From Macrostomum lignano (lineage: Eukaryota): 64,000 bases of DNA. The position numbers and the translations under genes are program-made. Below the pieces are notes generated by a model. It was given only the letters and a program-made list of their open reading frames with translations. It was not told the origin of the DNA and made no database searches. Numbering within the stretch: position 1 is the first letter of the stretch; each line of letters begins with the position of its first letter. Positions 1 to 38,058 of the stretch are shown here, piece after piece. The DNA lies in NCBI GenBank assembly GCA_002269645.1, contig NIVC01001135.1, positions 186,001-250,000 of the forward strand, in the 5' to 3' direction.

Positions 1-809
1 TATAAAGGACAGAACACAAGTTGCTAGCTAAAATATAACCGACTAGATAAATTTCACCTATGATAATAAATAAACATTACTTTTTTGCAGATGAATGATT
101 CTTAGAAATATTGCTTTTTAGTATGTGCATCTCGTGCGTGTAGGTTTACCTCAGAGTCCTGACCTTTTTAAAATAAAGTTTAATTTTGCAATAAAAGATT
201 CTCTGATTCTTTAAAAACTTAAAAGCACCCGCTCAGACCCCTAAAACGGTGGATTAAATTTCCGATTGCGATTGAACATCATTTATAAAAAAACTGCTTA
301 CTTGCTCAATGTTCTTCTCAGGAGTCCCAGACGATAAAAGTGATTTAAGTGAAGTGTAGCTCATATGTTAAAATGATCGCATCTACGATATAACTAATTA
401 TGTGTAGTCGTATGTGTTCTAATTCATATGAAAGCTTTAAAATGTATAGTATGTTCATTACATAAACTAAAATTTATTTACTTGGAATAATAGAGGGCCA
501 GGTAATAAGCAGAATTAGGAATCTATTTGTTATACGAGTATTTCTTGTTCAAATAATAATTAATTCTTAATTATCCGTAGATTTGGCAATAACATGTACG
601 AGCGTATGTTTTCAATCAGAAACGGCAATAATTATCTGCTTTGCAACTGATCGCCTGCGCAGAAGTGTTCCATTATGAGTGTATAAATAAAATTAACAGT
701 TTATTTATTCATCATTGATTTAGTAATTAACAATTCCAATCTGTGTTCAAACGAATCATGAAGAATGTGTATACTGTATAGTATGTTGTAACTACATTGT
801 ATACACAAT

Positions 810-837
810 AACAACAACAACAACAACAACAACAACA
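810..837. repeat. (AAC)9A microsatellite at the 5' flank of the Ingi-like LINE
   Basis: Nine AAC units plus A, directly before CCCGCTG at 838; a same-length tract lies at 6450-6477. Confidence 0.95.
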
Positions 838-876
838 CCCGCTGTGCTTTACGCGCAGCCTGCGGCTCGCCCGCAG

Positions 877-946
877 CTCCTACCCGGCGCCGCGTCTTCG
901 TCGCGGAGGGGAGCACCTCTCTTGGGAAGGGGTCGAAGAGCGCCGG
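877..946 (+). ncRNA. Candidate HDV-like (nested double-pseudoknot) self-cleaving ribozyme in the LINE 5' end
   Basis: Manual fold: P1 877-883/905-911 (6 of 7 pairs), P2 884-890/940-946 (7 of 7), P3 GCG 892-894/CGC 902-904, L3 UCUUCGU, P1.1 C896-G913 and U897-A912, P4 915-933, J4/2 C934-GAA. Confidence 0.6.
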
Positions 947-967
947 AAAACGGACACTACGTCCCTC

Positions 968-2021
968 GTGCTTTTGGTTACTTGGATTGTTATCTTTCTC
1001 TGCAGCGCGTACCTGGACCACGGGAAGCTCGGCAGTGAGGCCCGCCACCTTCCCACGCTGCTGCTCAGGGCCGGTGATATCGAGCTCAACCCGGGACCTG
1101 CTCTCTGCGGGCAGCGTGAGTGCGGACGCCCGCTCAGAGGGAAGTCCCTCCACTGCCGCATCTGTGATAAGTACTACCACCTCCAACGCGACTGCTCCGG
1201 GCTGAGCAGATGGGCGGCTAACAAGGCCATCGGCTCCACCGAATGGCGCTGCACTAGCTGCACGAACCGAGGCAGCAACGCCGTCAATTCCACTTATTCT
1301 TTCGACTCGGACAGCCAGCCAGAGGTGGCCCCTACTGAAGTCGCCGAAGTTAGCCGGCGACAAGAACTGCTCCAACGCATCCAACGAGACAAGCCGAACT
1401 GCACCCACTGCCGCAAACCCATCCGAATCAGCACTGTTATTGCGTGCCGTAACACCTGCGAAGGTCTCTTCCATAATGCTTGCACCCAGGCCACCCGGGA
1501 TCAGATTAAACGCGAAGTCAGCAGGGGAATGTGGCGCTGCCCTCCTTGCTCGAAAGCAGCCAGCCGTAGTCCACCCTCCCCCACGGGCTCGGACCCGACC
1601 ATCCCTAGGCGCGGCAGCTCAGCTCCCGGTTGGGACAGCTCGAAACCGACCTTAACCATTCTGCAATGGAACGCCGACGGGATCTGCAACAAGATGGGGG
1701 AGCTGGAGGAACTAGCTCAGAGACTTCAGGTCGATATTATCACCGTCCAGGAGTCCAAGCTCACGTCGCTCAATCGAACCCCTAAGCTGTCAGGCTATTC
1801 CACCGTTCGCAAGGATCGCAAAGTAGCTAGGCTCGACCCCAGCATCAAAGGAGGAGGCCTGTTGCTCTTCGTCCGCCAAGGCATTCCGTATCGTAAAATC
1901 CAGGGCTGGAACGGCGGCACCACTGAAGGGAGCCGTATCGTCGTGAACACGTCCGCCCGCGACAGACTTATCATCACCAATATTTATCGCCCCCCGATCC
2001 GACGTATCGAAGGCGAGGACC
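968..2021 (+). CDS. LINE ORF, N-terminal part: 2A-like peptide, tandem PHD fingers, first half of APE endonuclease
   Basis: ORF track 968..2227; after 2021 the frame runs into the nested insertion. No in-frame ATG before the second PHD finger. Confidence 0.85.
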
Positions 2022-3104
2022 TTGACTTACTTCTTGACTTAGCTGCAGGGCTGTCCCGGAGGGGACACAGCGGGAAGGCGCGGGCGCCCATTCCGCTAGT
2101 CCCTGAACGGCCGACGCGTCGCTATGGACGGAGGGTTGGCGCCGCCCAGGGAGGTCCCCCAGTGTCGCCAGCAGCTATGGTGCTCTCTGGAAAGGAGAGT
2201 TCAGCCCTGCGGGTGGCCCGAAGGTAGCGCATGAGCTGATTAAAGTTTTCGGGTTTGCACGCTTCAGTAATCTATAATTTGCACGGCCCGAGGTAAGTGA
2301 GTCTGGCCCGCGTGAAGGCGGGACAGATGCTGACGAAATGCTCAGCGGTTTCGTCACCTGAGTTGCAGAAACTACAGGTGGCGTTGGTGGCGTTGCCCTG
2401 CAGGTACTGGTGCCTGGAGAAGCAGCCGTGACCAGAGAGGGTCATGGTGGCAGCCCGGATGTCTCTGCGCGAGAGGCGCAAGAGGAGCTTCCGGAGCTGG
2501 TGAGAGGGCTGAGGGACAGCGCCTCTGGATTGCCTGCAGTTCGTGCGGTTCGCCCAAGTCGAGCGGTGCTGAGTCCTGATCCACGCTTTGATGCGCGAGT
2601 CGATGACACAGCCAGGAATCGGGACAAGAGGTTCGGGGCCGAGAGAGGAGCCGGAGGCACCAACTTTTGCAAGGGTGTCAGCCAACTCATTTCCTCGGAT
2701 CCCCACATGCCCCGGAACCCACTTAAGGGTAATTTTGTTGGCGGAACCCAACACGTTGAGGAGTTTATTGATACAGTCGAGGACTGTAGCAGAGTTGGTG
2801 CTGCAGCCACTGATGGCGTGCAAGGCAGCTTGGCTGTCCGAATGGAAAATGATGTTCTTACCAGTAACGCCAGTGGCGAGAAGCTCTGCAGTGCAGGAGC
2901 TGATGGCCAGAACTTCATTTTGGAAAACACTGGAGTTGACCCCAGTGTATTGAGCGTGGGTAGCGATGACCCTCCCGTTCAGAAAGATTCCAACACCAAA
3001 GCCGGTGTTGGCTGACTGCTTAGAACCGTCGGTGTAGCAATGAAGCTCACCAGGGTTCCATTGGTCATTGATGTTATCGCGCGAGTCGATAGCTACGGAG
3101 TAGC
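2022..3104 (-). mobile_element. 5'-truncated RNase H-bearing non-LTR retrotransposon (LOA/Tad/I-group-like) inserted antisense in the APE domain
   Basis: Minus ORF has YTDGSK, NEVLAI, SDSQAA, WVPGHVGIRGNELAD and a C-terminal knuckle (SGHG...CSFC...EHFVSICP). 12-bp TSD AAGGCGAGGACC at 2010-2021 and 3105-3116; short AAGT/AAGTC-repeat tail. Confidence 0.92.
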
Positions 3105-3116
3105 AAGGCGAGGACC

Positions 3117-6100
3117 ACCGCGAACATCCTAGTGTCGACAGCTGGCTCCGCTGCCACCACCGCGAGATCATCACGGGCGACTTTAACCTGCACCACCCAT
3201 CCTGGGGGAGCGACGCCGATCAGGGCCGGGACAGCCTGCCTCAATCCCGTTGCCTTATCAACTGGTGTTCCTCTACCAACTACCGGATACTCAACTCCGG
3301 AGCTCACACCTGCATCGACCGTCACTCAGGGCGCTCCAGCGCTCCCGACCTCTCCATTGCCAGCCAGGAGATCGCCCCCCGCTGCACCTGGTCCACTCTC
3401 AATGAACTTGGATCGGATCACAAACCTATCCTGATCTCTATCAGCACTGCTCGGGACACTCTTCGAGTGACACCCAGATTGCACTGGGCTTGGAAGAAAG
3501 CCGACTGGTCTCAGTTCAGGTCCATTCTTGAGGAAAACTGTGAACACCTCAACCGAGGTTCCATCAAGAAACAGGTCAGCCGGCTTACCAAAGGTATGCT
3601 CAAAGCGGCAGAACTGGCCATCCCGCGAAAAAAGGTCTCCATCAGAAATAAACCGTACTGGGATGACGAGCTGAGCAAACTGCGTGATCATCGCAACGCT
3701 CTCCGTGAAGCCGCCGCCCCTCCCGAGGAATGGCGCGCTAAAAGCCAGGAGCTTATCAAGCGCTGCGGCGAAAAGAAACATGAATTTTGGAAGGACTTTA
3801 TCGGAAAAATGGCCGAATCCGAGGACCCCAAAAAGGTCTGGAACACCATCAAATGCCTTAGCAACGGCAAACAAGCGGCCCACCCTAACGAGAACCTGGT
3901 CGTAAATGGAAAGGAACTCTGTACCGACAAGGACAAAGCCAACGCCTTCGGCAGATATTATGAAGACATTAGCACTCTGAAGCACGACGCCACCCACCGC
4001 AAATTCAAGGAGCAAACGGCTACTCGCCTAGCCTCCTATGAGGCGGACGACGACAACTATCGCCGTGACTTCACCGAGGGTGAACTGCTCAGAGCTCTCG
4101 ACAGACTTGATCCCAGCAAGAAATGCGGCCCCGATGGCATTGAAGCAGCGTTCTTTCTGCACCTGCCCGACCGCTGGAGAGCCGCGTGGCTCAAGGTCTT
4201 CAACCGCTGCTGGCGCACTGGACACTGCCCTGGCCCCTGGAAGCAAGCTATCATCATTCCTCTGCTCAAGGATGGCAAGGACCCCAAGGATCGAAGCAGT
4301 TACAGACCAGTTAGCCTCACCTCCATCTGCTGCAAAATTCTCGAAAGACTCATTCTGGACCGCCTCTACTACTGGCTGGAGCGACATAGAAAGATTCAAC
4401 TATGGCAAGCCGGCTTCCAACGAGGCCGGGGCTGCGAAGAACAGGTCGCCCGCCTGGTCCAGGCCATTCAAGACGGTTGGGAGCGCAACCCGCATCTCAA
4501 AACCCTTGCCGTGTTCATAGACTGCTCCAGAGCGTTTGACAGAGTCTGGAGGGCCCGACTCCTCGCCCGGATGATGGACGAGGGCCTTCCCGCCTGTATG
4601 GTCAAATGGTTTGACAGTTTCCTTGAGGGCCGCCAAATTGCCGTTAGAATCGGCGCGACCACCGGAAAATGGCGCCGGCTCCGTGAGGGAGTCCCGCAAG
4701 GGGCTGTCAGCTCGCCGGCCCTCTTCCTTCTCTACGTTAATGCCTGGTCCGACTACATGACGGCGAATGTCGAATATAGCGGCTACGCGGACGACATCGC
4801 ACTCTGGACGACGGGCCGCGACATCCGAGAGCTTCTTGCTCGCACTCAAGATGCGCTCCAGAAGATCGGACAGTGGGCAGATCACCTGCGCATTGACCTT
4901 AATCCATCCAAGACCGAATGCTGCCTCTACAGCAGGGACCGCGCCGACCGCGACCGCGCTCTTCACCTCTCGCTGAACGGCCACTCGATCCCCTCCAAGA
5001 AAGAACTGAAGTTCCTCGGGGTGTGGATAGACCATAGCCTCCTTTTCGATAAGCACTCCAACGCGGTCAAAGAGAAGATGGCACGCAGAACCGCCATCAT
5101 CCGCGCGCTCGCCCATCGCGAATGGGGCTGGGACCGCGCCCTGCTCCTCCGGGTTTATCGAGCACTCGTCGAATCTGTGGTCTGGCACGCTGCTGCTGCC
5201 TGGACTCCATGGCTGTCCAGTACCCGCCTCGACGACCTGGACCGCGCTCAAAGAGAAGCCCTCAGAGCCATCACGGGATTGCCACGCTCGACACCGGTGG
5301 AAGCCATCTATATGGAAACCAACGTCAGTCCGATCAGCCTCGAAGCCCGCCGTAGGGCCCTGATGGCCTACGAGAAAGCAAACCGCCGCCCGGCCGACGA
5401 TCCGTTCCGGCAGATTTGCGACAGGCAACTCAACATCCGGCTAGCGGCCAACAAAGGGCTACGAGAGCAAGCCAGAGCCATCTGCAACGCTATGATCCCT
5501 CTCCCGCGTCTGCCTATACCTACGATCCGCAATCCCCCATGGGACTCGCTGGTTGATTGCGGGGTGCAGATGTACACCAAACTCCCCGAGCATGAAGGAT
5601 CTGCGACCGAGGCAGTGCTCTCCGCGATTGAGCAGCGTTGTCCCGACGCAGCCCTCTACTTCACTGACGGTTCAGCCTCAGGAGGCACCACCAACGGGGG
5701 ATCGGCCTGGATCCTCCTCCACAAAGAAGACGGCACCATCATCCGCAGAGGGCACGCGGCAGCTGGCCGATGGTGCAATTCCTACGAGGCCGAGCTTCAA
5801 GCCATTACTCTCGCGCTTCAGGACATCATTGATTCCGCTCCCGCCTGCGCCGCCATCCTCACGGACAGTCAAAGTGCCATTACCGCCATCCAAGCCGACC
5901 GGCCCACGCTGAACGTTAGGCTCGAGCTAGCGAAGACCCTCCTCGTGACCGCGGCCCATAGGACCAAACTTACGCTGCTCTGGGTGCCCGGGCACTCGGG
6001 AGTGCACGGCAATGAACTCGTCGACACAGAAGCGAAAGTCGCAGCGACTCTCTGTCAAGATCAGGTGCTTATCTCGCTCCCCGCCTCCAAGGAGCGGATC

Positions 6101-6436
6101 TACCATCACCTTAGGTATCAGCCCGACCTGCCAGGACACCTGGAGGTATACCGCACCCCGGTGTCCCCAGGAACGGGCTCTCGTCGGCAGAAGACGCTTA
6201 TATCCCAAGTCAGATCCGGCCATTGCCCAGAATCATCCTACTATCGTCACCGAACAGGCATCGCCGAAGGAGGGCCATGCCGGCTATGCAATCAACCGAC
6301 TGAGCAGTTCCATATTCTCCATTGTCCTAAGCTCGAACTTACTAGACGCACCATCGGCGTCACTAGCATTGGTGACCTTGCACGAGGAGAAGTAGTGGCG
6401 CAGCTCCTGGGGGCCATCGACTGGCGGCCCCTTTGA
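3117..6436 (+). CDS. LINE ORF, C-terminal part: rest of APE, reverse transcriptase, RNase H, zinc knuckle
   Basis: ORF track 3467..6436 extended upstream in frame through ITGDFNLHHPSWG and SDH. Confidence 0.93.
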
Positions 6437-6449
6437 GCTCATCTCCGCA

Positions 6450-6477
6450 AACAACAACAACAACAACAACAACAACA
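6450..6477. repeat. (AAC)9A tract: 3' tail/target of the Ingi-like LINE and (GTT)n tail of the antisense RTE fragment
   Basis: Direct reading; the RTE copies at 48.7 kb and 58.7 kb also end in TGT/GTT repeats. Confidence 0.9.
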
Positions 6478-7400
6478 GAATACGCAGTCAGCGTCACAGG
6501 GCGCGCCTCAAGGCCAGGTCCCGAATGAACGCCACGCCGCCGGCCGAATCCGGGGCGTCAGCCAGCAGGCAGTCGACGAAACGCCGAGTGCGCGCCTGCC
6601 CCCGCCGGTAGGGTGCCTGCAGCGTCAGCAGCCGCCAAGAATGCCGCATCCATCGCTGGCGCGTCAGCGAGCACCTCGTACAGCAGCGCGGTGGCAGCGG
6701 TCAGGCGCGAAATCGGCGACCCGCCCCTGACCCACGCCCGCACGATTTCCGTGTACCGCGCGCTCAACCGGCAACGCGACCGCGCCGAACTTCAGAATCG
6801 TCAGGATGCCGTCCTCCTGGCGAGGCTCCGCGCGGGCCACTGCAGCCTTCTCCGCGCGTACAGTCGCATCGTCAACCCGACGGCGGACCCCATTTGCCCA
6901 CGCTGCGAGGAGGGCCCGGAAGACCTCGAGCACTGGCTCGGTTGCCCGGCCCTCCGGAGGCTCCGCCTCGAGCTGTTCGACGAGGACACCCTGGACCCCG
7001 GGATTCTGACCGTCGCCCCCGCGAGGTCGGTGGCGCTTGCGAGGCGAAGTCTCTGACTCCCTCGGCGCCTTTGCCCCAACAACAACAACAACAACAGCAG
7101 CAGCACCTCCTGCACCGGCTGTGGGCAGTACGACTCGGCGCGGATGATGTGGCCTGCCAGCTGGAGTCGCCGACGGCGCAACAGGTCGCTTGGACGGACC
7201 AGGCCGGTGCGGCGATACAAAGCCGCGTTGGTCACTCGCTCGTAGCCGATCTTGAAGGCGGCGCGCAGCAGGCCAGCGTGCGCCGCGTCAACTTGTTGCT
7301 CGAGCGACTCCGTCAGCGCCCAGGTCTCGGCGTTGTACAGCAGGACGATCTCGATCACCGCCTGGAACAATTAACGCCGCCCTCTGGCGGTCAGGCAGGG
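6478..7400 (-). mobile_element. 5'-truncated RTE-clade LINE fragment, split by an insertion at 6633-7095
   Basis: FQAVIEIVLLYNAETW...LRRRRLQLAGHIIRAESYCPQPVQEVLL continues at 6632 as LLTLQAPYRRGQARTRRFVDCLLADA; homologous to 48488-48750 and 58140-58680. 5' boundary approximate. Confidence 0.85.
6633..7095 (+). mobile_element. 5'-truncated second Ingi-like LINE (C-terminal zinc knuckle only) with (AAC)6 tail
   Basis: LLARLRAGHCSLL...CPRCEEGPEDLEHWLGCP, stop at 7056, (AAC)6 at 7078-7095, flanked by duplicated AGCAGC inside the RTE AGCAGCAGC tract. Confidence 0.85.
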
Positions 7401-7788
7401 CCCAACAACAGGCAAAAAGTTCCACCCACCAAGCAAGTATATTTTTATTCACCTTTTACCGTGTATTTAAAATGAGAAGTTTTCTCTCTAACTACGCGTG
7501 ATTTGTACAGATTGAACTTTTGACTGTTGCTGAGAAATCATGGCACCATTGAAAAGTCGCCATCTTTTGCGCGCCGAGCAATTTCTCTCGGATCTCACTT
7601 GCAAGTTGCGCAACTCACTCTCACCGCGGGGCAATCATTACGTCATCCTCACACTGGCAATTAGGGTGTAGGACAAAAACAATGAAAACATCATTTATTA
7701 AGTTTCAATTAAGTTATAAGCCCTGCTGGCATGGTATCAACCATGCATTTGATTCACATGTAAGATGTTTTTAATTCAGAAAAGGTCT

Positions 7789-8420
7789 TAGTAACGAGTG
7801 TGTCCTCCGCGAGGCAAAAGGCAGAAACGCTTCGCGGCATCCCCAGAGAATGAGGCGCCGCAGAAATCTTGAGGAAGACTCTGCCAGGCATCTGTAATGA
7901 CATTTTGTGGCGGATTCTCCCGCTAAATTTTGCGCTTCAGAAAGTCCCAGACATGTTCGATCGGGTTCAATCATGTTCGATCGGGAAGACAATTTCCGTC
8001 CCCGAGTGCAATGAGATCCCAGCCCAGACATGTAAGCTGACTGACTGTCTGCACATTGCACACATGCTTCTGCAATCATCTTCTGCCTGAGGTTCTCGCC
8101 ACACACGAGTGCGACCGTCAGCTCGGAAAAGGCGAAACCGGCCCTCGTCGGTGAAGACGACACACGCCATCACTGCTGCTGCCTCCAGTGAATGCGCTGC
8201 ACAGCCCACTGCTCACAGCAGGCAAAATGAGCAGGACTTAGCCGCGATTGCTTGCGATGTTTCGGGAGTGCAGCCCGGCTTCTCGGAGACGCCGTCGGAT
8301 GGTCTGAGCACTCAGGATGTTTCCTCGCCTGCTTTTCTCGCCCCATTAGACTGCTTACGACTCTTGACATCCTCTCTAATTGCATGATGTACGGGCGGAC
8401 GTGTAGATCGAACATCCATG
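7789..8420 (-). pseudogene. Degenerate Tc1-family transposase relic
   Basis: Across frames: LSAQTIRRRLREAGLHSR, VFTDEGRFRLFRADGRTRVWR, VWAGIS, LNPIEHVWDFLKRK, GGHTRY-stop. The middle catalytic segment is missing at a duplicated CCCGATCGAACATG. TIRs not found. Confidence 0.85.
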
Positions 8421-9028
8421 ATTTATGTACAACGGCTTAAAAGTACATGTCAAGAAATTACTCCCATGAAAGTTTCAACGGAAATGAATGTATTTTATTA
8501 TTCCGAACAACGATCGGATTTATTCAATTTATAACTCGAATTCAAATTATCAAAGAAGTCAAGCAAGAAAACTGCATGGCAGCTTGAAAGAATTTCCGCT
8601 CGATCAAATTCATGGACAGATTTATTTTTGGTGTTCAATCAAAGAAAATGTAGAATCGTGTCAGTGTTGAACAACCCTTGCAAATTTAGAAGCGATCGCT
8701 AAGGAAGCCATCTGCCCTGACATGGGAGGCAAAACAAGTTATTTTTTATCCCAGATAACACGAGACAGGAATTGGAGAAACGCTGGAGTGGCAGGTTGCG
8801 CTGGATGCAGCGTGACTGGCACAGATTCTGGACTGTCAGGAAGATGGAGGCGGGGCCAAGCTGCTCCTTTGTTTCAGCTCACCGCCCCACCCCATGGGAT
8901 CAGCAGACAGCAGCTGGAGAGCATAAAAGCCGATGTGTCCGGCGCTGGCATCGATGCTGCGCTCCTTCGCCAACTAAGCGTCGACCTTCTCCTCAAGTCA
9001 GAGATAACTATTGGAGTCTCGAGTTGCT

Positions 9029-9530
9029 ATGCACATCAAGCCGTCATCAGCAGGCCTGGCCGCTCTGCACCTGGCCCTGCTGCTGCTGTACGTCAGCGCC
9101 GACAAGGTCGAATCCGTCAGAGACGACAAGGCGGCTTCCGTAGAGGACAAAATCGACTCAGGTGAGTTCTGTGACTCGTGCGCTGTGCTAATTCAGCTGC
9201 CAATCAGAACTTATCAGGTGAAGCTGGATCTCCCCAACAAACGGTCCCGCAGGCTTCGACATTCTGGTGCCGGTCTCCGAGCCGGAGCGGCGCAAAATCT
9301 GCAGCAAGTGCGCCGACTGCCTGATGTGCGCCAGCGACGCCGCCGGCTTCGAAGACGGCATCGACGCGTTTCCAGTGGCAGCCGGCAGCAAGTTTGAAAT
9401 CCACTGGACGGACAGCGACCCGGTGGCTGAGAACCGGCGAAAGCGCATCGTGGACCTGACAAGGCCGGCCAGGTACCACTGCGGCAAGTGCCCGACCTGC
9501 TACTGCTACTACAGAGCCTGGCGCGGCTGA
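9029..9530 (+). CDS. Small secreted Cys-rich protein, about 143 aa (predicted exons 9029-9161, 9197-9217, 9253-9530)
   Basis: Signal-peptide-like MHIKPSSAGLAALHLALLLLYVSA; two phase-compatible 35-bp GT-AG introns join it in frame to CSKCADCLMC...RRKR...CGKCPTCYCYYRAWRG-stop. Confidence 0.62.
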
Positions 9531-10527
9531 GCAGTCGGGGCTTTGGACCGACCAGCAGTGAACCATCCGTGAAAATTGACTCAAATATCTATATAAGACG
9601 CTACTGTTACCGCTTCTGTACTTCCTATACAAAAGTTGCCAGGGAAATACACGCCTCAAGTATTAACATCTTACTGAATCATTTTTCGGATAGCCAGTGA
9701 GCAATTGATTACCTCTTAAGACTCAAATGAATTACTAATCTAGTTAAGAGGCGCGAGCGATATGCATGCATGAGCGATATCGTCCCACAACCACATCTGA
9801 GGCAACTCTGCCAATTCCGACTGTGATCTGCAGTTACCAAAACCGTCATCCAAGAATGCTCGTGCTCATCAATGCTCATCACAATGCCCCCGGCCCACAA
9901 GTCCAGACAATTAGTGACCAAATTCTTGGCTAAGAAATGCGCATCACAAATCCGGGAGTAATGTACGTGGGTCGTCTGAAGCTGCAGTGGATAGAGGCCT
10001 TCACCGAGTATGTAGGAAGTGCCTGCTTCGGAATGGTCAAACTGCCTCAACAGGTAGTTTGAGCAAATGCTATCGTGCATAATTGTTTAATCGTTTGGAG
10101 AGCAGTGTGGTACTTTGAAATAATTGACCGTCAGTAGCCTATCAACAACTACGAGAGTTACGTTCGGTTCGTAGTAGAGACACTTGCAGAGAGTCGTGAA
10201 ACTTGCTGCTTCGGGGCCACCGTACACCCTGTGTGAGCGTGTGTACGAGTGCATGCCTGAGTACAGTATTGGAGCACTTGTGTGTGCGGAAATGGGCGGA
10301 GTTGCCGTCAGCTCTGGTTGTTATTCTGTCCAAATCAGTTAATAAAAATCAGTAACAACAAAGACAGAATAGCAATGAACAGTTTCATGAACTGCAGTTG
10401 ATGCACACATTTTTATTTATTATTTTTTTAATCCAGCAGGCCAATCCGTCAAACGCTTGCCGCAGAGCGGCTGCCAACACTTTTTTAAAGTCATAAATCT
10501 GCCAGCGCGCTTTCATCTCCGCCGAGT

Positions 10528-11847
10528 TTAGCGCTTCCTGCGCATCCTCAGGAAGTTGTTCTTGCGCCAGAAGGCGTGCCGACTACCGCCGATGGTCTGG
10601 TGGAACCGGTGACCCTTGCCCAGTCCGCGGCTCTTCTTAGAAGAGCTGGTCAGGCCGCGCATCTCCCTGTGCTTGTGCTTGGCGGTGCAGATCCAGTTGA
10701 TGCGCGGGTCGCGCCTGATGGCCTTGTGGTTGGGATCCACCAGGATCACCTCGTAGAACTTGTAGGTGGAGTCCTGCGCGATCCAGTAGGAGCCCAGCAC
10801 GCGGAGGGCGCCGATCTTGCGGCCGATTCGCTCCTGATGTGTGGGAATTGGTTTGGGCATTGAATTGGCGCCACCCCCTGTTTTTCAGCCATAGAGTGGC
10901 GCCAACCCCAGTTCTTCAGCCATAGAGTGGCGCCAACCCCCCAGTTCTTCAGCCATAGAGTGGCGCCACCCCCCAGTTCTTCAGCCATAGAGTGGCGCCA
11001 ACCCCCCAGTTCTTCAGCCATAGAGTGGCGCCACCCCCAGTTCTTCAGCCATAGAGTGGCGCCACCCCCCCCCCAGTTCTTCAGCCATAGAGTGGCGCCC
11101 CCGCAGTTCTTCAGCCATAGAGTGGCGCCACCCCCTGTTTTTCAGCCATAGAGTGGCGCCACCCCCTGTTCTTCAGCCATAGAGTGGCGCCAACCCCAGT
11201 TCTTCAGCCATATAGTGGCGCCCCTGCAGTTCTTCAGCCATAGAGTGGCGCCACCCCCCAGTTCTTCAGCCATAGAGTGGCGCCAACCCCCCAGTTCTTC
11301 AGCCATAGAGTGGCGCCACCCCCCAGTTCTTCAGCCATAGAGTGGCGCCCCCCCCCCCCCAGTTCTTCAGCCATAGAGTGGCGCCCCCGCAGTTCTTCAG
11401 CCATAGAGTGGCGCCACCCCCCAGTTCTTCAGCCAGAGTGGCGCCATCCCCCATAATTTTTTTCAGCCATAGAGTGGCGCCATCCCTCCTGTTCTTCAGC
11501 CATAGAGTGCCCTTTCCCCGGTCCCACGTGACCCTGACCTCGGCGATGGCCTGATGGCTGCGCTGGTTCTTTAACTGGTTGACACCCTCGTGCACCGGCT
11601 TGCCATAGGTGGCGCCCTTGGGCACCGGGCGCTTGCGACCGCCGCGGCGGATGCGGATCCGGTAGATGACGAAGCCCTGCTTGGCCTTGTAGCCAAGGCG
11701 GCGGGCCCTGTCCGGCCGGGTGGGCTTGGTGGCCCGGTGGATCACGTGCCTCTGGCGCAGGTGCCAGCAGCGCAGGCGCAAAATGAAGCGCATCACATCG
11801 GATTGCTTTTTGCGGTACAGCTCCGAGATGAACTTGTAGGCGCCCAT
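10528..11847 (-). CDS. RPL15: 60S ribosomal protein L15 (eL15), 204 aa; coding exons 11847-11539 and 10833-10528
   Basis: [17 protein letters not shown]...[16 protein letters not shown] joins [17 protein letters not shown]...[10 protein letters not shown] across a phase-0 GT-AG intron; 103+101 codons. Confidence 0.97.
10862..11508. repeat. Minisatellite, about 31-33-bp unit CCCCAGTTCTTCAGCCATAGAGTGGCGCCA, in the RPL15 intron
   Basis: About 20 tandem copies with a variable C run. Confidence 0.97.
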
Positions 11848-11904
11848 GACGGCTGGAAGTGCAGCGGGGAAAGTGTGAGGTCAAGAAATACTTTAGCGGA
11901 ATTA

Positions 11905-12275
11905 TAAGGGACATCTGAGGTCAAGTTCTATTTAGGTCACTTACTGGGGTCATCTGAGGTCAAGGTTCTTTTAGGTCACTACTGGGGTCATCTGAGGTCA
12001 AGTTCTATTAGGTCGCTTACTGGGGTCATCTGAGGTCAAGCTCTATTAGTTTATTTACTGGGGTCATCTGAGGTCAAGTTCTATTTAGGTCACTTGCTGG
12101 GGTTATATGAGGTCAAGTTCTATTAGGTCGCTTACTGGGGTCATCTGAGGTAAAGTTTTATTAGAAGTTTATTTACTGGGGTCATTTGAGGTCAAGTTTT
12201 ATTAGAAGTTCATTTACTGGGGTCATTTGAGGTCAAGTTTTATCAGAAGTTTACTTACAAGTCATCTGAGGTGAA
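11905..12275. repeat. Minisatellite, 38-39-bp unit (TTACTGGGGTCATCTGAGGTCAAGTTCTATTAGGTCAC), in the probable RPL15 5'UTR intron
   Basis: CATCTGAGG recurs at 11912, 11951, 11989 and onward. Confidence 0.95.
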
Positions 12276-12478
12276 ATTCTAAAAATGCTGACTGTGCTTA
12301 AATTTCATTATTTATTGCAAAGCAAATACTAATCGAGCAATCAATGCGTCATTAAATTTATTGATCAACAGTAAACATTTCTACAGCAGAATAAATGTGA
12401 GCGATACAGCCCCGAATAAGCGAGTCAAAAACCAAAAATTGATTATAAGCCGAGGCATTTGATAACTACAATAACCAC

Positions 12479-12506
12479 CTTGTGCTAAAGTAAAGGGAAG
12501 AAGAAA
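12479..12506 (-). promoter_or_regulatory. Probable RPL15 non-coding first exon with TCT/5'TOP pyrimidine tract
   Basis: Minus strand TTTCTTCTTCCCTTTACTTTAGCACAAG followed by donor GTGGTT; a matching acceptor TTCCAG lies 5 nt upstream of the ATG (exon starts at 11852). Confidence 0.5.
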
Positions 12507-12541
12507 TTTAAATAAGTGGGGATTCGTGGGTTGATGAAAGT

Positions 12542-12547
12542 TTTATT
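12542..12547 (-). terminator. Candidate poly(A) signal AATAAA for CTU1
   Basis: AATAAA on the minus strand just past the minisatellite that follows the CTU1 stop. Confidence 0.45.
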
Positions 12548-12580
12548 ATTAAACTGACAACCAAAAACAGACTGTAAAAG

Positions 12581-13015
12581 GGAATTGCCAATAGGACACG
12601 GTAAAAGGGAATTCCCATAGGACACGGTAAAAGGGAATTCCCAATCTAGGACACGGTAAAAGGGAATTCCCATAGGACACGGTAAAAGGGAATTCCCATA
12701 GGACACGGTAAAAGGGAATTCCCATAGGACACGGTAAAAGGGAATTCCCAATAGGACACGGTGAAAAGGGAATTCTCAGTAGGACACAGTGAACAGGGAA
12801 TTCCCAATAGAACACAATGAACAGAGAATTCCCAATAGGACACGGTGAAAAGGGAATTCTCAGTAGGACACAGTGAACAGGGAATTCCCAATAGAACACA
12901 ATGAACAGAGAATTCCCAATAGGACACGGTGAATAGGAAATTCCGTATAGAACATAGTGAACAGGGAATTCCGGTAGAACACACTGAACATGGAATTCCC
13001 AATAGGACATCTGGT
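12581..13015. repeat. Minisatellite, about 26-28-bp unit GTAAAAGGGAATTCCCATAGGACACG, downstream of the CTU1 stop
   Basis: Period 26 at 12601/12627; copies diverge towards 13015. Confidence 0.95.
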
Positions 13016-13086
13016 GAGATAGCTATTCCCAAAATAGACTCTCAAAACACTAGAAGGCGATTCCAAAGAACAGATTTAAAAAGTCA

Positions 13087-15113
13087 TCAAGAATCCGCCG
13101 CCGCAGCGCATGCCGATCCCGAGCAGCCGCGCCTGGCGCCGGCGCTACCGCAGCATTGGGCGCTATTACGCCCAGCATCAGTAAGCATTCGCTGCTGCTG
13201 TTGCTTAGCCGAACAAGCCGAGGATTTGCCAACAGCCAGCCGGGGATTGCCGGAGTTCAAGCCGTCCAGCAGCACGCAGGCTTTGCACACTGGCTGGCTG
13301 CTGACGTAGCCGCACAGCCGGCAGGTGTCCAGCTCCGGCATTCGAGCATCGGTTCGGAATCGAATCTGTTCAGCGGCCTGGATAATGTGCAGCAGAGCGG
13401 CCGGCCTGGCCCGCTCCAGATCCTTCACCAGAGCCCTGGCGTGGCCCCTGTAGGCAGCCGGGGCGTACAGGCACTCGGTGGCGAAGTAGTCAAGCCGTTT
13501 GAAATAGGCGTAGAGCACGATCTCCTTCTCGTAGGCGTACTTTAACGGCTTGCAGCGGGCCGGCAGGCCGCCGCCCGTGTGGGTGACGCCGTCGGCGCAG
13601 CGGGACAGCCTGGCCGCGTCGCCACGCAGGAGGTTCATCACGACGGTCTCGGCCACATCGTCAGCATTGTGACCGGTGGCCAGTTTGTCAGCTTTAAGAT
13701 GACCGGCGCCTCTGTCCAGGGCCTGGCGACGGAACACGCCGCAGAAGGTGCAATTGCTGCGCCGGCCAGCGGCCCGGACAACTTCGTCCATTGTCCAGCC
13801 GTACAGGTCGCGATAGGTGAAGATTGTGAGGGGCAGGCCGAGGCTGACCTGTACAATTTGATGGAAAAAGCCTGTTATACTACTTGATAATAAACAGCGT
13901 AAGTAGCTTTCTAATTTTATTTAACTTTTGATTCAATCCATAAGCTAAATTGTGAAGTTGATACCTGGACTTTAAAAGGTATTACCTGGGTTTCACAGGT
14001 GATACCTGGGTTGGACAGGTGATACCTGGGTTTCACAGGTGATACCTGGGTTTCACAGGCGATACCTGGGTTTCACAGGTGACACCTGGATTTCAAAAGT
14101 GACATCTGGATTTCAAATGTGATACCTGGATTTCAAAAGTGACACCTGGATTTCAAATGTGACACCTGGATTTCAAAAGTGACACCTGGATTTCAAAAGT
14201 GACACCTGGATTTCAAACGTGACACCTGGATTTCAAAGGTGACACCTGGATTTGAAATATGACACCTGGATTTCAAATGTGATACCTGGATTTCAAAGGT
14301 GACACCTGGATTTCAAAAGTGATACCTGGATTTCAAAAGTGACACCTGGATTTCAAAGGTGACACATTGATTTCAAAGGTGATACCTGGATTTCAAAGGT
14401 GACACATTGAGTTCAAAGGTGATACCTGGATTTCAAATGTGACACATTGATTTCAAAGGTGATACCTGGATTTCAAAGGTGACACCTGGATTTCAAAAGT
14501 GATTTCAAAAGTGATACCTGGATTTTAAAGGTGACACCTGGATTTCAAAGGTTACACCTGGATTTCAAAGGTGATACCTGGATTTCAAAGGTGATACCTG
14601 GATTTCAAAGGTGATACCTGGATTTCAAAAGTGACACCTGGATTTAAAAGTGACACCTGGATCTCAAAGGTGACACCTGGATTTCAAAGGTGACACCTGG
14701 ATTTCAAAGGTGACACCTGAATTTGATACAAAATGCTACACTGAGTTAAAACGATGACAAACCTCTGTGCGCCTCAGAGCGTCCAGAGAATCGTCCCGAT
14801 AACCGGCAATGCCCTCATCAATAGCCAGCAGGCGCAGATCCAGCCCATAATTGTGCCTCTCATTTAGCGTCTTCAATAGGTAGGCCAGCACAGTGGAATC
14901 TTTGCCGCCGGATGCGCCAATAGCGACGCGTTCGCCGGGCGAGAACATCCGGCTGGAGACGATCGTGTCGTGAGTTTCAGCTTCGAATGCCCAGAAGAAG
15001 CAGTCGCGGCAGACTGCGTGGCCGGTTTTTGGCCGACGAAGCTGCGGCTTCTTCTCGCAGAAACGGCACCTGCGCTGCGGCTGCCGCTGCGGTTCAGCCT
15101 GCGGTGAGGCGGC
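13087..15113 (-). CDS. CTU1: Cytoplasmic tRNA 2-thiolation protein 1; exons 15113-14763 and 13848-13087; start codon not found in the genome
   Basis: N-terminal CRFC...CRDC, PP-loop [26 protein letters not shown]-terminal [16 protein letters not shown]; phase-0 GT-AG intron. Confidence 0.95.
13960..14720. repeat. Minisatellite, 20-bp unit GTGACACCTGGATTTCAAAG, in the CTU1 intron
   Basis: About 37 tandem copies. Confidence 0.97.
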
Positions 15114-15134
15114 CTGCAGTTCCAGAATGAGATG

Positions 15135-16205
15135 GCATTGATGAGGCTGATGCTGGGGTGTGATTGATGAGGTTGATGCTGAGGCATGTGATTGATGAGG
15201 CTGATGCTGGGGAGTGATTGATGAGGCTGATGCTGGGGAGTGATTGATGAGGCTAATGCTGGGTGTAGAATAGATGAGGCTGGTGCGGGGGAGTGATTGA
15301 TGAGGCTGATGCTGGGTGTAGAATTGATGAGGCTGATGCTGGGGTGTGATTGATGAGGCTGGTGCTGGGGAGTGATTGATGAGACTGATGCTGGGTTGTG
15401 ATTGATGAGGCTGGTGCTGGGGTGTGATTGATGAGGCTGGTGCTGGGGTGTGATTGATGAGGCTGGTGCTGGGGTGTGATTGATGAGGCTGATGCTAAAG
15501 GTGTGGGATTGATGAGGCTGATGCTGGGGTTGGGATTGATGAGGCTGATGATGCAACATGTGATTGATGAGGCTGACGCTGGGGCATGTGAATGATGAGG
15601 CTGATGCTAAAGGTGTCGGATTGATGAGGCTGATGCTAAAGGTGTCGGATTGATGAGGCTGATGCTGGGGTGTGGGATTGATGAGGCTGGTGCTGGGGTG
15701 TGATTGATGAGGCTGGTGCTGGGGTGTGATTGATGAGGCTGGTGCTGGGGTGTGATTGATGAGGCTGATGCTGGGGTGTGGGATTGATGAGGCTTATGCT
15801 GGGGCATGTAATTGATGATGCTGGGTGTAGGATTGATGAGGCTGATGCTGGGGTGTGGGATTGAAGAGGCTGATGCTGGGGTGTGGGATTGGTGAGGCTG
15901 ATGCTGGGGTGTGGGATTGATAAGGCTGATGCTAAAGGTGTCGGATTGATGAGGCTGATGCTAAAGGTGTCGGATTGATGAGGCTGATGCTGGGGTGTGG
16001 GATTGATGAGGCTTATGCTGGGGCATGTAATTGATGATGCTGGGTGTAGGATTGATGAGGCTGATGCTGGGGTGTGGGATTGAAGAGGCTGATGCTGGGG
16101 TGTGGGATTGGTGAGGCTGATGCTGGGGTGTGGGATTGATAAGGCTGATGCTGGGGCATGTGATTGATGATCTGATGCTGGGATGGGATTGATGAGGCTG
16201 ATGCT
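15135..16205. repeat. Minisatellite, about 26-28-bp unit GATTGATGAGGCTGATGCTGGGGTGT, directly upstream of CTU1
   Basis: About 40 copies; explains the spurious His/Gln-rich ORFs. Confidence 0.96.
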
Positions 16206-16584
16206 TGATGTTTAAGGTGCTTTACTTTGCAAAGGATAACCGAAACAAAAAGTTAGTCTTAAAACTAATATGAAGAAGTCACAATATAATTTGGTTAGCT
16301 AGCAAAAATATGCATAATATACTCAAACAGCATTATAAAGATAACAAATGTGCTGCTAAAACCGGACACAATGAAATATGAAATGCTGCAACAGCTGAAA
16401 ATCTACACTGCGCCTTACTTGTAACTTTTTTAACACAAAGCAATAAGTTTGAATTTGCTGCAGAAAGATATAAGAACATTTAAAGGTGGAAAATATTGAA
16501 CCTCAGACTGCAGCAATGGTTGTATTGCAAAAAGTTACGCTCATAATTCACAGGCTTTAGCAAAAAAACAGACAAATTATACAC

Positions 16585-17070
16585 ATTGACCAATAGGAGC
16601 ACGGCATGGATTCCTCAGTTCTCTTGACCAATAGGAGCATGGCATGGATTCCCCAGTTCTCTTGACCAATAGGAGCACGGCATGGATTCCTCAGTTCTCT
16701 TGACCAATAGGAGCACGGCATGGATTCCCCAGTTCTCTTGACCAATAGGAGCACGGCATGGATTCCCCAGTTCTCTTGACCAATAGGAGCACGGCATGGA
16801 TTCCCAGTTCTCTTGACCAAAAGGAACACGGCATGGATTCCTCAGTTCTCTTGACCAATAGGAGCACGGCATGGATTCCCCAGTTCTCTTGACCAATAGG
16901 AGCACGGCATGGATTCCCCATTTCTCTTGACCAATAGGAGCACGGCATGGATTCCCCATTTCTCTTGACCAATAGGAGCACGGCATGGATTCCCCAGTTC
17001 TCCTGAACAATAGGAGCACGGCATGGATTCCCCAGTTCTCCTGAACCAATAGGAACATGGCATGGATTCC
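16585..17070. repeat. Minisatellite, 38-bp unit CCAATAGGAGCACGGCATGGATTCCCCAGTTCTCTTGA, between POLRMT and CTU1
   Basis: Period 38 at 16591/16629; about 12 copies. Confidence 0.97.
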
Positions 17071-17197
17071 CCTAACAATTGTGAACGTCAGAATGCGCTA
17101 TACGCTTGAAACGGAAAGACGTAGCGCTTCTCAGGCACACAATAACAAATCTAGAAGATAGTAAGTTATCTGTACAAAAAATATTGCCACAAGCATC

Positions 17198-20100
17198 TCA
17201 GGAGAAGAAATACTCGGACCGCAACACCTCGGACAGATCGAAGTCGCCCTTGTCGGGAATCTGCAGAATTCGAGAATTAAATCGCTTAGCAGCCTGCAGC
17301 TTCTGGCCGCTGAGGCTGGCCAATTCTGACTGACGAAATGAGAACACGCGATCAATATGCGAGCTGAGATCGGCTAGGATTGGCTTGCTGTGCAGCTGGA
17401 CAAACTGCTGCCTACAGATCCTGCCCATGGCGTCCACGTCGCACGGATGCGTCCAGAAGCAGTCGTGCACCGCGGCAAAAGTGACGCCAAACTTCTGGCA
17501 CTCCAATGCCGTTAGCATCATATGACACGAGTCGAGCGAGTGCACAAAATTAGGCGGAAACGCGTTGGACTGTTTGACCGGATCGGGCGGATACGGCTGC
17601 ACAATGGGCAGGCCTAGCGGAGTTCGCCATTGGATTGAAGCCTGCCTCAGCTTGGCCACGTCCTTGGCCAGATCGGTGAACCAGTGCTGAATGTGGGTGG
17701 CGCTAGTGAAAATCCTGCCAATGCTGGACAGGGTCAGTTTAGCCAAATAGGCTGCTGCCTTGTGCCGCATCTCGCTAGGGAACTCAGCGTCCTTCAGCCT
17801 GGCCAGGATCTGCTGTATGGCGCCGTACTCCGTGACGCCGTAGACTGTGGTCATCACCGACTGCTTGATTGTGCGCCTAACTACGTAGCCTTGAAGCGAC
17901 TGGGCAACCGCGTGACCTTGAGCGGCATCGGCTACTCTGGTAGACTCTACCAGATCTACAACAGCCTGGTAGACATCTTGCGGCCGGTCAACCGCTCGCA
18001 GATTGACAGCCAGAGCGCCGGCCACATCCCGGCCCATTGCGGCGTAGTGTTGCAGTCCGTTGCAGCTGCCGTCCTGGTGCACAGGGAACGAACTCACGTA
18101 GCGTTCCGGCCCGTCTGGATGCCTGGCAGCGGCGAGGATCTCAGAGCACGTGGCCAGAGTCTGCCAGGGAGCTTCGTCGTTCTGCCACCAGCCGCGCCCG
18201 GTCCAGGGCCGTTCGGCGCTGTCGATGATATCCGGCAGCAGCGAGTCGGCCATGTCTAGCCGTTCGGCGTTTGTCAATTTTTTGCCAAGATCCGCCACAT
18301 TGATGGCGTGAATGCGGAGCCAGCGCCAGCCGCGCTCGCCCAGAGGCTTGGCATTGTTGAAGCGAAGCAGCGAGCGGGACAGATCGCAGCTCATGTGGTT
18401 CAGATGGGGTGGCATTGGGTAGGCCCGGCCTCTGCAAAAGTTAATTTTACTTTTCGATACATATTGGCTTTTTGTGCAGTTTTGTATTTTTCGATACATA
18501 TCGGCTTTTTTGTGCAGTTTTGTATTTTTCGATACATATCGGCTTTTTTGTGCAGTTTTGTATTTTTCGATACATATCGGCTTTTTTGTGCAGTTTTGTA
18601 TTTTTCGATACATATCGGCTTTTTTGTGCAGTTTTGTATTTTTTGTTACATATCGGCTTTATTTCTCAGCCAGACGGTTCTCGAAAAATTCAAAGACAGA
18701 CAGAAAGACAGACAAACAAACAGCGCAAAATTAGCATATAGATTATACTACGCTCGTAATTATAATAGTTAATATATTATTACTAACCGACTACTCACCG
18801 AAAGTCCATATTATGCGGCAAGTAGAACGGCCGGTCCTTCAGCCAATCGGCAATGGACAGCCGGTAAAGCTCCGTGCACCAGAGAGAATAGCGCTCCCTT
18901 TCAGCTTTGCGCTCGGCCGCTTTCTCCCGGCGTAGGGCGGCAATGTCGGCCCTCGACGCGCCCGGAGCCGGAGGCGCTAGGCGCTCTACAGATCGGGGTC
19001 GGGCAGGCAGCGCCAGGTGCTCGGCGCCGCTAGAATTGAAGCGGTCAGTTATCAAGCGGAGCATGGCTCTGTCAACTCGCCAGGCGCAGGAGCTCACGGT
19101 CTGGTCGCGGTTGTTGGGGAGAATTCAATTGATAGGATTAGCGCGTGAAAAAAGAAACAGATAAAATGAAATATAGGACTGTTTGAGTGTGAATATGGGG
19201 ATGCTTAAGGAATCTGCAGCAGTATTTAGAAGTATGCATTCTGAGTCTGAGATGATGCTGATTTAAAGGATTCGGGGATAATGCAGATTTAAAGGATTAT
19301 GAGATGCAAATTTAGAGGATTCTGAGTCTGAGATGATGCAGAATTAGAGGATTTTAGGATGACGCCGGTTTAGAGAATTCTGATATGATGCAGATTTAGA
19401 GAAGATTCTGGGATGATGCAAGCAGATTTAAAGGATTCTGGGATGATGCAAGCAGATTTAAAGGATTCTGGGATGATGCAGATTTAAAGGATTCTGGGAT
19501 AATGCAGATTTAAAGGATTCTGGGATGATGCAGATTTAAAGGATTCTGGGATGATGCAGATTTATAGGATTCTGGGATAATGCAGATTTAAAGGATTCTG
19601 GGATAATGCAGATTTAAAGGATTCTGAGATGATGCAGATTTAAAGGATTCTGGGATGATGCAGATTTATAGGATTCTGGGATAATGCAGATTTAAAGGAT
19701 TCTGGGATGATGCAGATTTAAAGGATTCTGGGATAATGCAGATTTAAAGGATTCTGGGATGATGCAGATTTAAAGGATTCTGGGATGATGCAGATTTATA
19801 GGATTCTGGGATAATGCAGATTTAAAGGATTCTGGGATGATGCAGATTTATAGGATTCTGGGATAATGCAGATTTATAGGGTTCTGGGATGATGCAGATT
19901 TATAGGATTCTGGGAGGATGCAAATCTAGAAGATTATGGAAAGATGTAGAACTAGATGATTTTGAAGAATTAAAACCAATATATACTAAAACAGACGAAG
20001 CCAAGAAGCCACAGATATTCTAATTGGCTAAAGAAGAAATCAAGTGACATGGAAAGCAAGAAAATAAGCTAACTCATACTCACATGCAGTGCCTCAAGAA

Positions 20101-37233: not shown

Positions 37234-38058
37234 TTACTCAGATTTTGGGTCGTCTCCATCAACAACTTGGCGCCTCCGCTTGTCGTACAGCTCGTAGACA
37301 ACAACAATGACCAGAATGGCGACAATTTCGCAGCCAATCGCCACGAGCGGAGTCAGGAAGCTCAGCGGACTCTTCACCCGCAGGAACAGCCTGGCGGTGT
37401 TCTCTCCGTACCTGTTTTTGGACGCGCAGGTGATGTAACCCCTGTCGGCTTCGTAGCTGACAGAGCTCAGGTAGAGCGTATTGTTATTTGTCAAATTGAA
37501 CGCCGGGTCTACAGACTTCGTCCAGCGAATGTCGCCCATCGGGTTGCCTTCGACCAGGCACAGTATTGCCACGCTTTCTCCGGGCCACATCGCCACGTCG
37601 TACTCGTTCGCCCCGTCCACCTTCATCGTCAGGAGTGGCGCGGACAAGAATCGGCCAGTGGCGGAAGCCGTCTGGTTGACAATGCAGACAAAGTTAGTGA
37701 TGTCAGACTTGACCGGGTAGTTGATGTTGAGCACCGAGGTACCAGAGAGGCCATTGTCAGCCAGTTTTGTGTCAACGGTGATTCTGGCGTCAACGGTTGC
37801 GCTGGAGTTGGAGTTTTCCAAACGCCAGAAGAAACTACTCGGGCTCAGCACCCCAGAGCTGCTGGCCCTGCAGGTAATGGCCAGACGTTTCAGCTTGCCA
37901 AGGGTGTACCTCTCGCCTGTTGAACTGCCAGAGTCTTTAAGACTCACCGAAACGTCGTCTACAGTAACATTGATGTGCTGAGCGGACACCACAGCAGCCA
38001 GCAGGAGCTGCAGGACAGCGGCAGCAATCGGGCTCTGGCAGGCGAACATTATCGACAT
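37234..38058 (-). CDS. Basigin/neuroplastin/embigin-family Ig-domain type I membrane protein, 274 aa, single coding exon
   Basis: Signal peptide, two Ig-like domains (C-W-C patterns, DRGYITC), TM segment PLVAIGCEIVAILVIVVVYE with the family's intramembrane Glu, then KRRR. Confidence 0.85.
   Translation of the reverse strand: MSIMFACQSPIAAAVLQLLLAAVVSAQHINVTVDDVSVSLKDSGSSTGERYTLGKLKRLAITCRASSSGVLSPSSFFWRLENSNSSATVDARITVDTKLADNGLSGTSVLNINYPVKSDITNFVCIVNQTASATGRFLSAPLLTMKVDGANEYDVAMWPGESVAILCLVEGNPMGDIRWTKSVDPAFNLTNNNTLYLSSVSYEADRGYITCASKNRYGENTARLFLRVKSPLSFLTPLVAIGCEIVAILVIVVVYELYDKRRRQVVDGDDPKSE

Follow-up and report, generated by a model that had tools for sequence, protein, structure and literature searches.

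The spliced-leader AUG as the probable start codon of the tRNA 2-thiolation gene CTU1 in the flatworm Macrostomum lignano

The tRNA 2-thiolation gene CTU1 of the flatworm Macrostomum lignano contains no start codon upstream of the part that encodes the essential N-terminal zinc finger of its product, and this lack is confirmed by the analysis presented here. The gene was studied in 64,000 nucleotides (nt) of contig NIVC01001135.1 (assembly GCA_002269645.1, positions 186,001 to 250,000), a stretch that we call the window and whose numbering is used throughout; CTU1 is read from its reverse strand. In all likelihood the missing codon is provided by the AUG with which the spliced leader (SL) of this animal ends. 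The reading draws on the genomic sequence, a comparison with orthologues, the published leader and the public gene models.

Two exons separated by a single intron encode a product that is 100% identical to the UniRef entry A0A1I8H5K8, ‘Cytoplasmic tRNA 2-thiolation protein 1’ of M. lignano, which shares a 90% cluster with the NCBI proteins PAA69784.1 and PAA78570.1 of the same assembly. The product matches the Pfam families PF01171 (ATP_bind_3, the PP-loop; E = 3e-13) and PF16503 (C-terminal zinc ribbon; E = 3e-15) and contains the PP-loop ATP-binding motif SGGKDS. Its residues 16-315 align to the [4Fe-4S]-dependent U34 thiolase 6SCY, an archaeal Ncs6 (E = 4e-46), and TtuA structures are matched as well. 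In an alignment of the M. lignano protein with 15 diverse eukaryotic orthologues the PP-loop stretch is invariant, and so are the cysteines C17, C20, C36, C39, C151, C154, C294, C297, C306 and C309. Those of the catalytic domain we take to be the ligands of the iron-sulfur cluster, going by the TtuA and Ncs6 structures.

The four cysteines of the N-terminal zinc finger, CRFC...CRDC, are invariant in all 16 aligned sequences. The predicted start methionine stands 3-4 residues ahead of the first of them in 11 of the 15 orthologues, and in the archaeal Ncs6 (6SCY) and TtuA structures the matching part sets in at residues 2-5, again with this CxxC. When the frame of CTU1 is followed upstream from the first cysteine codon at 15068, it stays open to 15494 without an ATG and is closed by a TAG at 15497-15495. 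The stretch from 15113 to 14949 is devoid of ATG in all frames, and the first in-frame ATG, at 14948, lies 40 codons downstream of the first cysteine of the zinc finger. The methionine that it encodes is M57 when residues are counted from the SL AUG; it aligns with an internal leucine in most orthologues (methionine in one), just ahead of the PP-loop, and a start at this position would thus leave the N-terminal zinc finger out of the protein. A preliminary description of this DNA, made from the sequence, had placed the zinc finger upstream of the first in-frame ATG and had let the frame run back into a minisatellite without meeting one; the walk along the frame bears out both statements. The open frame that enters this 26-bp minisatellite probably reflects nothing more than a repeat unit poor in stop triplets and was not counted as coding evidence.

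Where, then, could the start codon come from? Passages of PMC8629364 describe a single published SL for M. lignano, 35 nt long with the sequence CGGTCTCTTACTGCGAAGACTCAATTTATTGCATG, which ends in ATG. The same passages report that about 30% of the genes are trans-spliced and about 15% lie in operons, and they give [T/C]TNCAG as the trans-acceptor motif. The terminal ATG of the SL is called a likely start codon in the 2023 Macrostomum genome paper in G3. When Joint Genome Institute (JGI) contigs were scanned for the 3' half of the SL, the complete leader turned up at the 5' ends of five transcript contigs, and positions 639-659 of a genomic contig (L007, JGI Ga0302322) proved to hold an SL RNA gene, which reads ...TTGCATG/GTAAG, a slash marking splice boundaries here and below. 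The SL-bearing transcripts are environmental contigs (L003-L006 and L008, JGI Ga0316592), and because the exact 35-nt SL of M. lignano stands at their 5' ends, they presumably derive from a Macrostomum. As for an SL RNA gene within the window, neither Rfam nor a search with the SL pattern at up to three mismatches gave a hit. The preliminary description had assumed a flatworm with an AUG-ending leader and had named the lack of such a leader as fatal to its proposal; the published SL ends in ATG, and the SL RNA gene has this ATG directly before its GTAAG donor.

With such a leader, CTU1 would be the internal gene of a same-strand transcriptional unit that runs from POLRMT through CTU1 to RPL15. 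The 5' end of its mRNA would be made by SL trans-splicing at CTGCAG/GCC (exon start 15113), and sometimes the SL would instead be joined at one of four in-phase CAG/ sites just downstream. The junction would read ...UUGC AUG GCC GCC UCA..., the SL AUG being the only AUG upstream of the zinc finger. Since this would be the sole AUG ahead of an invariant zinc finger, full-length CTU1 would require trans-splicing. As far as the sequence tells, the SL would be joined at 15113 and ribosomes would start at its AUG.

What speaks for an acceptor at this place? Between the POLRMT stop and the first cysteine codon, a distance of 2.1 kb, there are five [T/C]TNCAG sites, and the one at 15113 is the sole site downstream of the minisatellite, the other four lying more than 1.2 kb upstream and past it. 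The AG/ sites that lie between the minisatellite and the zinc finger were listed in full: the exon starts 15113, 15098, 15086, 15080 and 15074 are all of phase 0, and a single site is out of phase, AG/G at 15069, where one base is left over ahead of the next codon (phase 2). Each of the five phase-0 sites would put the SL ATG in frame, with no stop in between, and the joined sequence of SL AUG and GCC GCC TCA, when translated, reads into CTU1. On both counts, the shared phase of CTGCAG/GCC and the nearby CAG acceptors and the in-frame junction, the preliminary description was right. The five acceptors are not independent, because they lie within a 12-nt CCGCAG-type repeat.

Along the same lines, the GC content at third codon positions (GC3) rises from 0.42 immediately upstream, read in the same frame, to 0.80 over the first 15 codons past 15113, the value for the entire coding sequence being 0.74. 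Of the shuffled sequences, 2.7% had a YTNCAG that was in phase and followed by no stop in the 60 nt ahead of the first cysteine codon, a frequency that taken alone is modest support. The window shares the acceptor, along with the 28 unique bases that precede it, letter for letter with two paralogous copies of the locus, L001 and L002; the minisatellites vary among the copies. These features suggest that trans-splicing would take place at an acceptor of this region, and that the SL may be joined at any of the five CAG sites. A 12-nt in-frame indel (AEPQ; window 15087-15098) was also observed: the window and L001 carry the 12 nt, L002 and A0A1I8H5K8 lack them, and one in-phase CAG acceptor is gained or lost with them.

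Table 1 Features of the CTU1 locus and its neighbours in the 64,000-nt window
Feature	Position	Strand	Remarks
In-frame stop TAG closing the CTU1 frame upstream	15495..15497	-	inside the 26-bp minisatellite
Proposed trans-splice acceptor CTGCAG	15114..15119	-	fits [T/C]TNCAG; preceded by pyrimidine-rich ccatctcattct
Four further CAG/ sites	15074..15100	-	exon starts 15098, 15086, 15080, 15074; in 12-nt CCGCAGNNNNNN repeat (CCGCAG-type)
CTU1 exon 1, from the proposed SL trans-splice site	14763..15113	-	zinc finger and PP-loop (SGGKDS); donor GAG/GTTTGT
N-terminal zinc finger CRFC...CRDC	15000..15068	-	Cys codons at 15068, 15059, 15011, 15002
First genomic in-frame ATG (M57 in SL-AUG numbering)	14946..14948	-	downstream of the zinc finger
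CTU1 single intron, GT...AG	13849..14762	-	914 nt; 20-bp minisatellite inside at 13955-14724
CTU1 exon 2	13087..13848	-	ends in stop TGA at 13089-13087
Spacer (presumed outron), POLRMT stop to CTU1 acceptor	15114..17197	-	2,084 nt
26-bp minisatellite	15137-16205		spacer upstream of CTU1
Unique AT-rich part of the spacer	16206-16585		
38-bp minisatellite	16586-17072		spacer upstream of CTU1
POLRMT last coding exon	17198..18613	-	stop TGA 17200-17198; PF00940, E = 8e-138
RPL15, downstream gene	10528..11852	-	exon 1 to 11539; exon 2 10833-10528; ATG 11847
RPL15 start region	11845-11852		L001 9357-9380; L002 9526-9549
28-bp minisatellite	12576-13009		
38-bp minisatellite (second)	11908-12281		
31-bp minisatellite	10866-11509		RPL15 intron

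The surroundings of the gene resemble an operon. POLRMT, which encodes a mitochondrial-type RNA polymerase, lies directly upstream of CTU1 on the same strand, and RPL15 comes next after CTU1 on that strand. The two spacers measure 2,084 and 1,234 nt; tandem repeats take up 1,556 and 808 nt of them and leave 528 and 426 nt. According to passages of PMC8629364, an operon of M. lignano consists of genes on the same strand that are less than 1 kb apart after repeat subtraction, with the downstream gene trans-spliced. The adjacency of the three genes and their repeat-adjusted distances of 528 and 426 nt fall within this definition, and CTU1 and RPL15, judging from the annotation, appear to be trans-spliced. 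The acceptor of RPL15, TTCCAG/, gives an exon start at 11852, with the genomic ATG following 5 nt later. The 2,084 nt that follow the POLRMT stop (15114-17197) contain neither of the poly(A) signals AATAAA and ATTAAA, whereas several such signals were seen after the CTU1 stop. The preliminary description had called this spacer AT-rich, which is too simple: an AT-rich unique part lies at 16206-16585, but 1,556 of the 2,084 nt consist of two minisatellites. Such repeats are a general feature of the unit (10866-17072, reverse strand): each of its non-coding intervals carries its own unrelated minisatellite, and about 70% of the spacers consists of such repeats.

The public gene models offer a second line of evidence. 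All four public M. lignano CTU1 models are without a start methionine and are flagged as partial or fragment, because gene finders seek a genomic ATG. PAA78570.1 (Mlig006805.g2) is 5'-partial and starts at CGG after CCGCAG/, the equivalent of 15086 and 27 nt past the acceptor. PAA69784.1 (Mlig015290.g2), likewise 5'-partial, starts after TCA, 9 nt past CTGCAG/, in a copy that is short by 12 nt. Both 5' ends fall inside exon 1. The neighbouring RPL15 genes are g3 of the units Mlig006805 and Mlig015290, of which CTU1 is g2. For the M. lignano annotation, as set out in passages of PMC5730564, transcriptional units were cut into genes by mapped SL and poly(A) reads, and 5'-specific libraries were drawn on as well. 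A model that reached above the stop at 15497 would take M57 as its start, and from the 5'-partial calls we infer that the transcript models begin where the annotated 5' ends lie.

The start of PAA78570.1 at CCGCAG/CGG was considered as the exact trans-splice site and dropped, the model of L002 starting after TCA and those of RPL15 being scattered. A further difference between the copies concerns exon 2: around position 8245 of L002 (about 13243 in the window) CCCC has become CCC, which shifts the frame for the last ~60 codons; the C-terminus of PAA69784.1 differs. This change is either a long-read homopolymer error or the mark of a decaying copy.

Several observations weigh against a start at the SL AUG. 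The resulting product would have 16 residues before the first cysteine, which is longer than in most orthologues. Neither in RPL15 nor in any of the five SL transcripts sampled does the SL AUG serve as the main start. It opens an open reading frame (ORF) of just 2-41 codons in the five transcripts, the main ORF lying 20-110 nt downstream. On the RPL15 mRNA it would stand out of frame, giving an upstream ORF of 20 codons that overlaps the RPL15 start, so that it must be bypassed. A T at -3 gives the SL AUG a weak context. Because the SL itself fixes this T, the context varies with the first base of the exon: the base at +4 is G in CTU1, and C, C, T, C, A and C in RPL15 and the five environmental transcripts. 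These numbers fit a picture in which the SL AUG is used on a minority of mRNAs and leaky scanning is the default, in line with reports on S. mansoni and E. granulosus; for a claim the sample is far too small.

Database searches add to the points on this side. The SL-exon junction string is absent from the JGI contigs, and an RNA-derived CTU1 protein of M. lignano, with or without the SL methionine, was not present in the protein collection. The N-terminal 103 residues retrieved no M. lignano fragment from this collection (best match 66% identical), and none of ten candidate full-length products, for five SL-AUG junctions in each of two alleles, had an exact match there. M. lignano RPL15 is without an RNA-run source there as well; the collection therefore apparently holds no M. 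lignano RNA assemblies, which makes the CTU1 negatives uninformative. Mlig006805 and Mlig015290 have no entry in the supplements of PMC8629364 and PMC5730564, and a full-text search for them returned 0 papers. The gN names, in turn, are not strictly positional, RPL15 being g1, g3 or g4 in another unit. Finally, five NCBI models of RPL15, all partial, start 2-23 nt past the acceptor and have lost the genomic ATG (their N-termini read VMGAYKF, YKF, KF, F and I). Annotated 5' ends are thus ragged, up to about 25 nt past the real site, and cannot discriminate among the CAG sites.

Could the annotated boundary mark a transcription start instead? CTU1 might have its own transcription start near 15100 and do without trans-splicing, translation then beginning at a non-AUG codon or at M57 without the zinc finger. 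As 5'-specific libraries went into the annotation, a boundary near 15086-15104 could indeed be a transcription start, and M57 would be the first AUG on such an mRNA. However, since the zinc finger does not vary between archaea and animals, a truncated enzyme is unlikely to work, and AGG at 15071 is the sole in-frame near-cognate codon between 15113 and the first cysteine. Similar raggedness at RPL15 cuts into an invariant N-terminus and hence must be an artefact, and a transcription start of its own would leave the acceptor motif, its phase and the step in GC3 unexplained. We regard this explanation as improbable.

An overlooked cis-spliced exon upstream that brings a genomic ATG to the same acceptor is, in our estimate, decidedly improbable. 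The spacer contains 209 ATG...GT combinations and, besides four more YTNCAG sites, one good donor, CAA/GTAAGG at 16418, and tiny first exons are easily overlooked. This donor belongs to the sole strong-donor candidate, which starts with the ATG at 16479 and ends in phase 1, whereas the acceptors are of phase 0 (five) or phase 2 (one). The donors of the remaining candidates agree with the consensus at no more than two of five positions, and most of them lie within the 38-bp minisatellite. No ATG exon with a good donor and a phase compatible with CTU1 was found in the spacer, and the screen of the 209 combinations upholds the preliminary description, which had seen no convincing coding exon up to the POLRMT stop. 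In addition, POLRMT lies directly upstream on the same strand, and the transcript-based models start 5'-partial in exon 1, which would be unexpected had an exon with an ATG been assembled.

Very improbable is a third explanation, that the examined copies are decaying or mis-assembled and a functional, ATG-bearing CTU1 exists elsewhere in the polyploid genome: the genome of M. lignano is a hidden polyploid one in which many genes are duplicated, L002 has its frameshift near the 3' end and a diverged paralogue may fall outside the best 120 matches listed, but three independent copies and the models of an older assembly share the ATG-less 5' end, the ORFs are intact with identical catalytic residues (L002 alone is frameshifted, and in a C-homopolymer, as is typical of long-read assembly errors), and the matches listed contain a single M. 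lignano CTU1 cluster, whose four members all lack a start methionine.

The SL AUG accordingly keeps its place as the probable start codon in our assessment, CTU1 combining at the sequence level an AUG-ending SL, an in-frame acceptor and the lack of a usable genomic AUG. One could go further and suppose that the start of CTU1 has been permanently ceded to the SL, that the CCGCAG repeat acts as a phase-locked ladder of acceptors and that thiolation is thereby tied to trans-splicing; this extended view we consider rather unlikely. If it were true, any of the five CAG/ choices would lead to an in-frame CTU1 with a complete zinc finger, and N-terminal isoforms with 3 to 16 residues before the first cysteine would be expected. 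Thiolation of the wobble U34 would then be hard-wired to the trans-splicing capacity of the cell, with CTU1 co-transcribed with the mitochondrial RNA polymerase and RPL15.

Initiation at an SL AUG is established in flatworms (Cheng et al. 2006, J Biol Chem 281:733, as cited in passages of PMC9851317, PMC12582326 and PMC3510090), and what the preliminary description had said of its use in Schistosoma finds its backing in papers that cite this study. For S. mansoni, the passages concerned report an SL AUG that is in frame in 28% and more than 40 cDNAs that depend on it. There, as in CTU1, a subset of mRNAs combines an AUG-ending SL, an AUG in frame and the SL as sole route to the full conserved N-terminus; initiation has been tested by experiment in S. 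mansoni, whereas for CTU1 it is predicted from the sequence. M. lignano also differs from S. mansoni as a free-living macrostomorph of a separate flatworm lineage with its own 35-nt SL. In Echinococcus granulosus, four of the eight SL cDNAs listed need the SL AUG to match the N-termini of their orthologues (PMC3510090), an argument of the kind used here. That study had full-length SL-cDNA clones; the CTU1 junction, in contrast, is put together from the genome and the public annotation.

The operons of M. lignano, as described in passages of Wudarski 2017 (PMC5730564) and Ustyantsev & Berezikov 2021 (PMC8629364), show the features of the CTU1 locus: same-strand neighbours, [T/C]TNCAG and adjusted spacers below 1 kb, with minisatellites that fill the spacers and inflate the intergenic distances. 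The SL ATG as the start of particular genes is not discussed in these passages. A more distant parallel are the SL-derived ORFs (slORFs) of nematodes, Oikopleura and trypanosomes (slORFfinder, PMC9851317), in which the leader likewise contributes the start codon. These use mostly near-cognate NUG codons and are often alternative or out of frame, whereas in CTU1 a true AUG would open the main conserved ORF.

Seen against these systems, CTU1 would be a fresh example of a mechanism documented in other flatworms and involves no new principle; a specialist will be unsurprised. If the reading is true, SL-AUG initiation is not confined to the parasitic flatworms but occurs also in a free-living, early-branching species amenable to transgenesis, and a conserved enzyme of tRNA modification would disappear if trans-splicing were lost. 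There is also a value for annotation, as the model of CTU1, and probably many other M. lignano models, would be completed by adding the SL ATG wherever a trans-splice site has been mapped.

A few observations concern other parts of the protein and of the window. The C-terminus of M. lignano CTU1 (window 13087-13230) is a tail rich in cysteine, glycine and alanine, and the terminal (D/E)F of 12 of the 15 aligned orthologues is missing from it. The Logan homologue P0005 has a similar C-terminal tail, CCGGSGSCG. Together with P0004 it is the closest match from outside Macrostomum among the best 120 listed; both have ordinary ATGs and are of no help on the question of the start. Elsewhere, the forward strand of the window carries a LINE-like (long interspersed nuclear element) retroelement with endonuclease, reverse transcriptase and RNase H domains (968-6436), a 903-residue ORF with DUF4062 and STAND-NTPase-like matches (39543-42254) and a mariner/Tc1-like DDE_3 transposase (61772-62824). 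On the reverse strand there are an ORF with an immunoglobulin (Ig) domain (37234-38166) and a RING-finger ORF (50128-51111).

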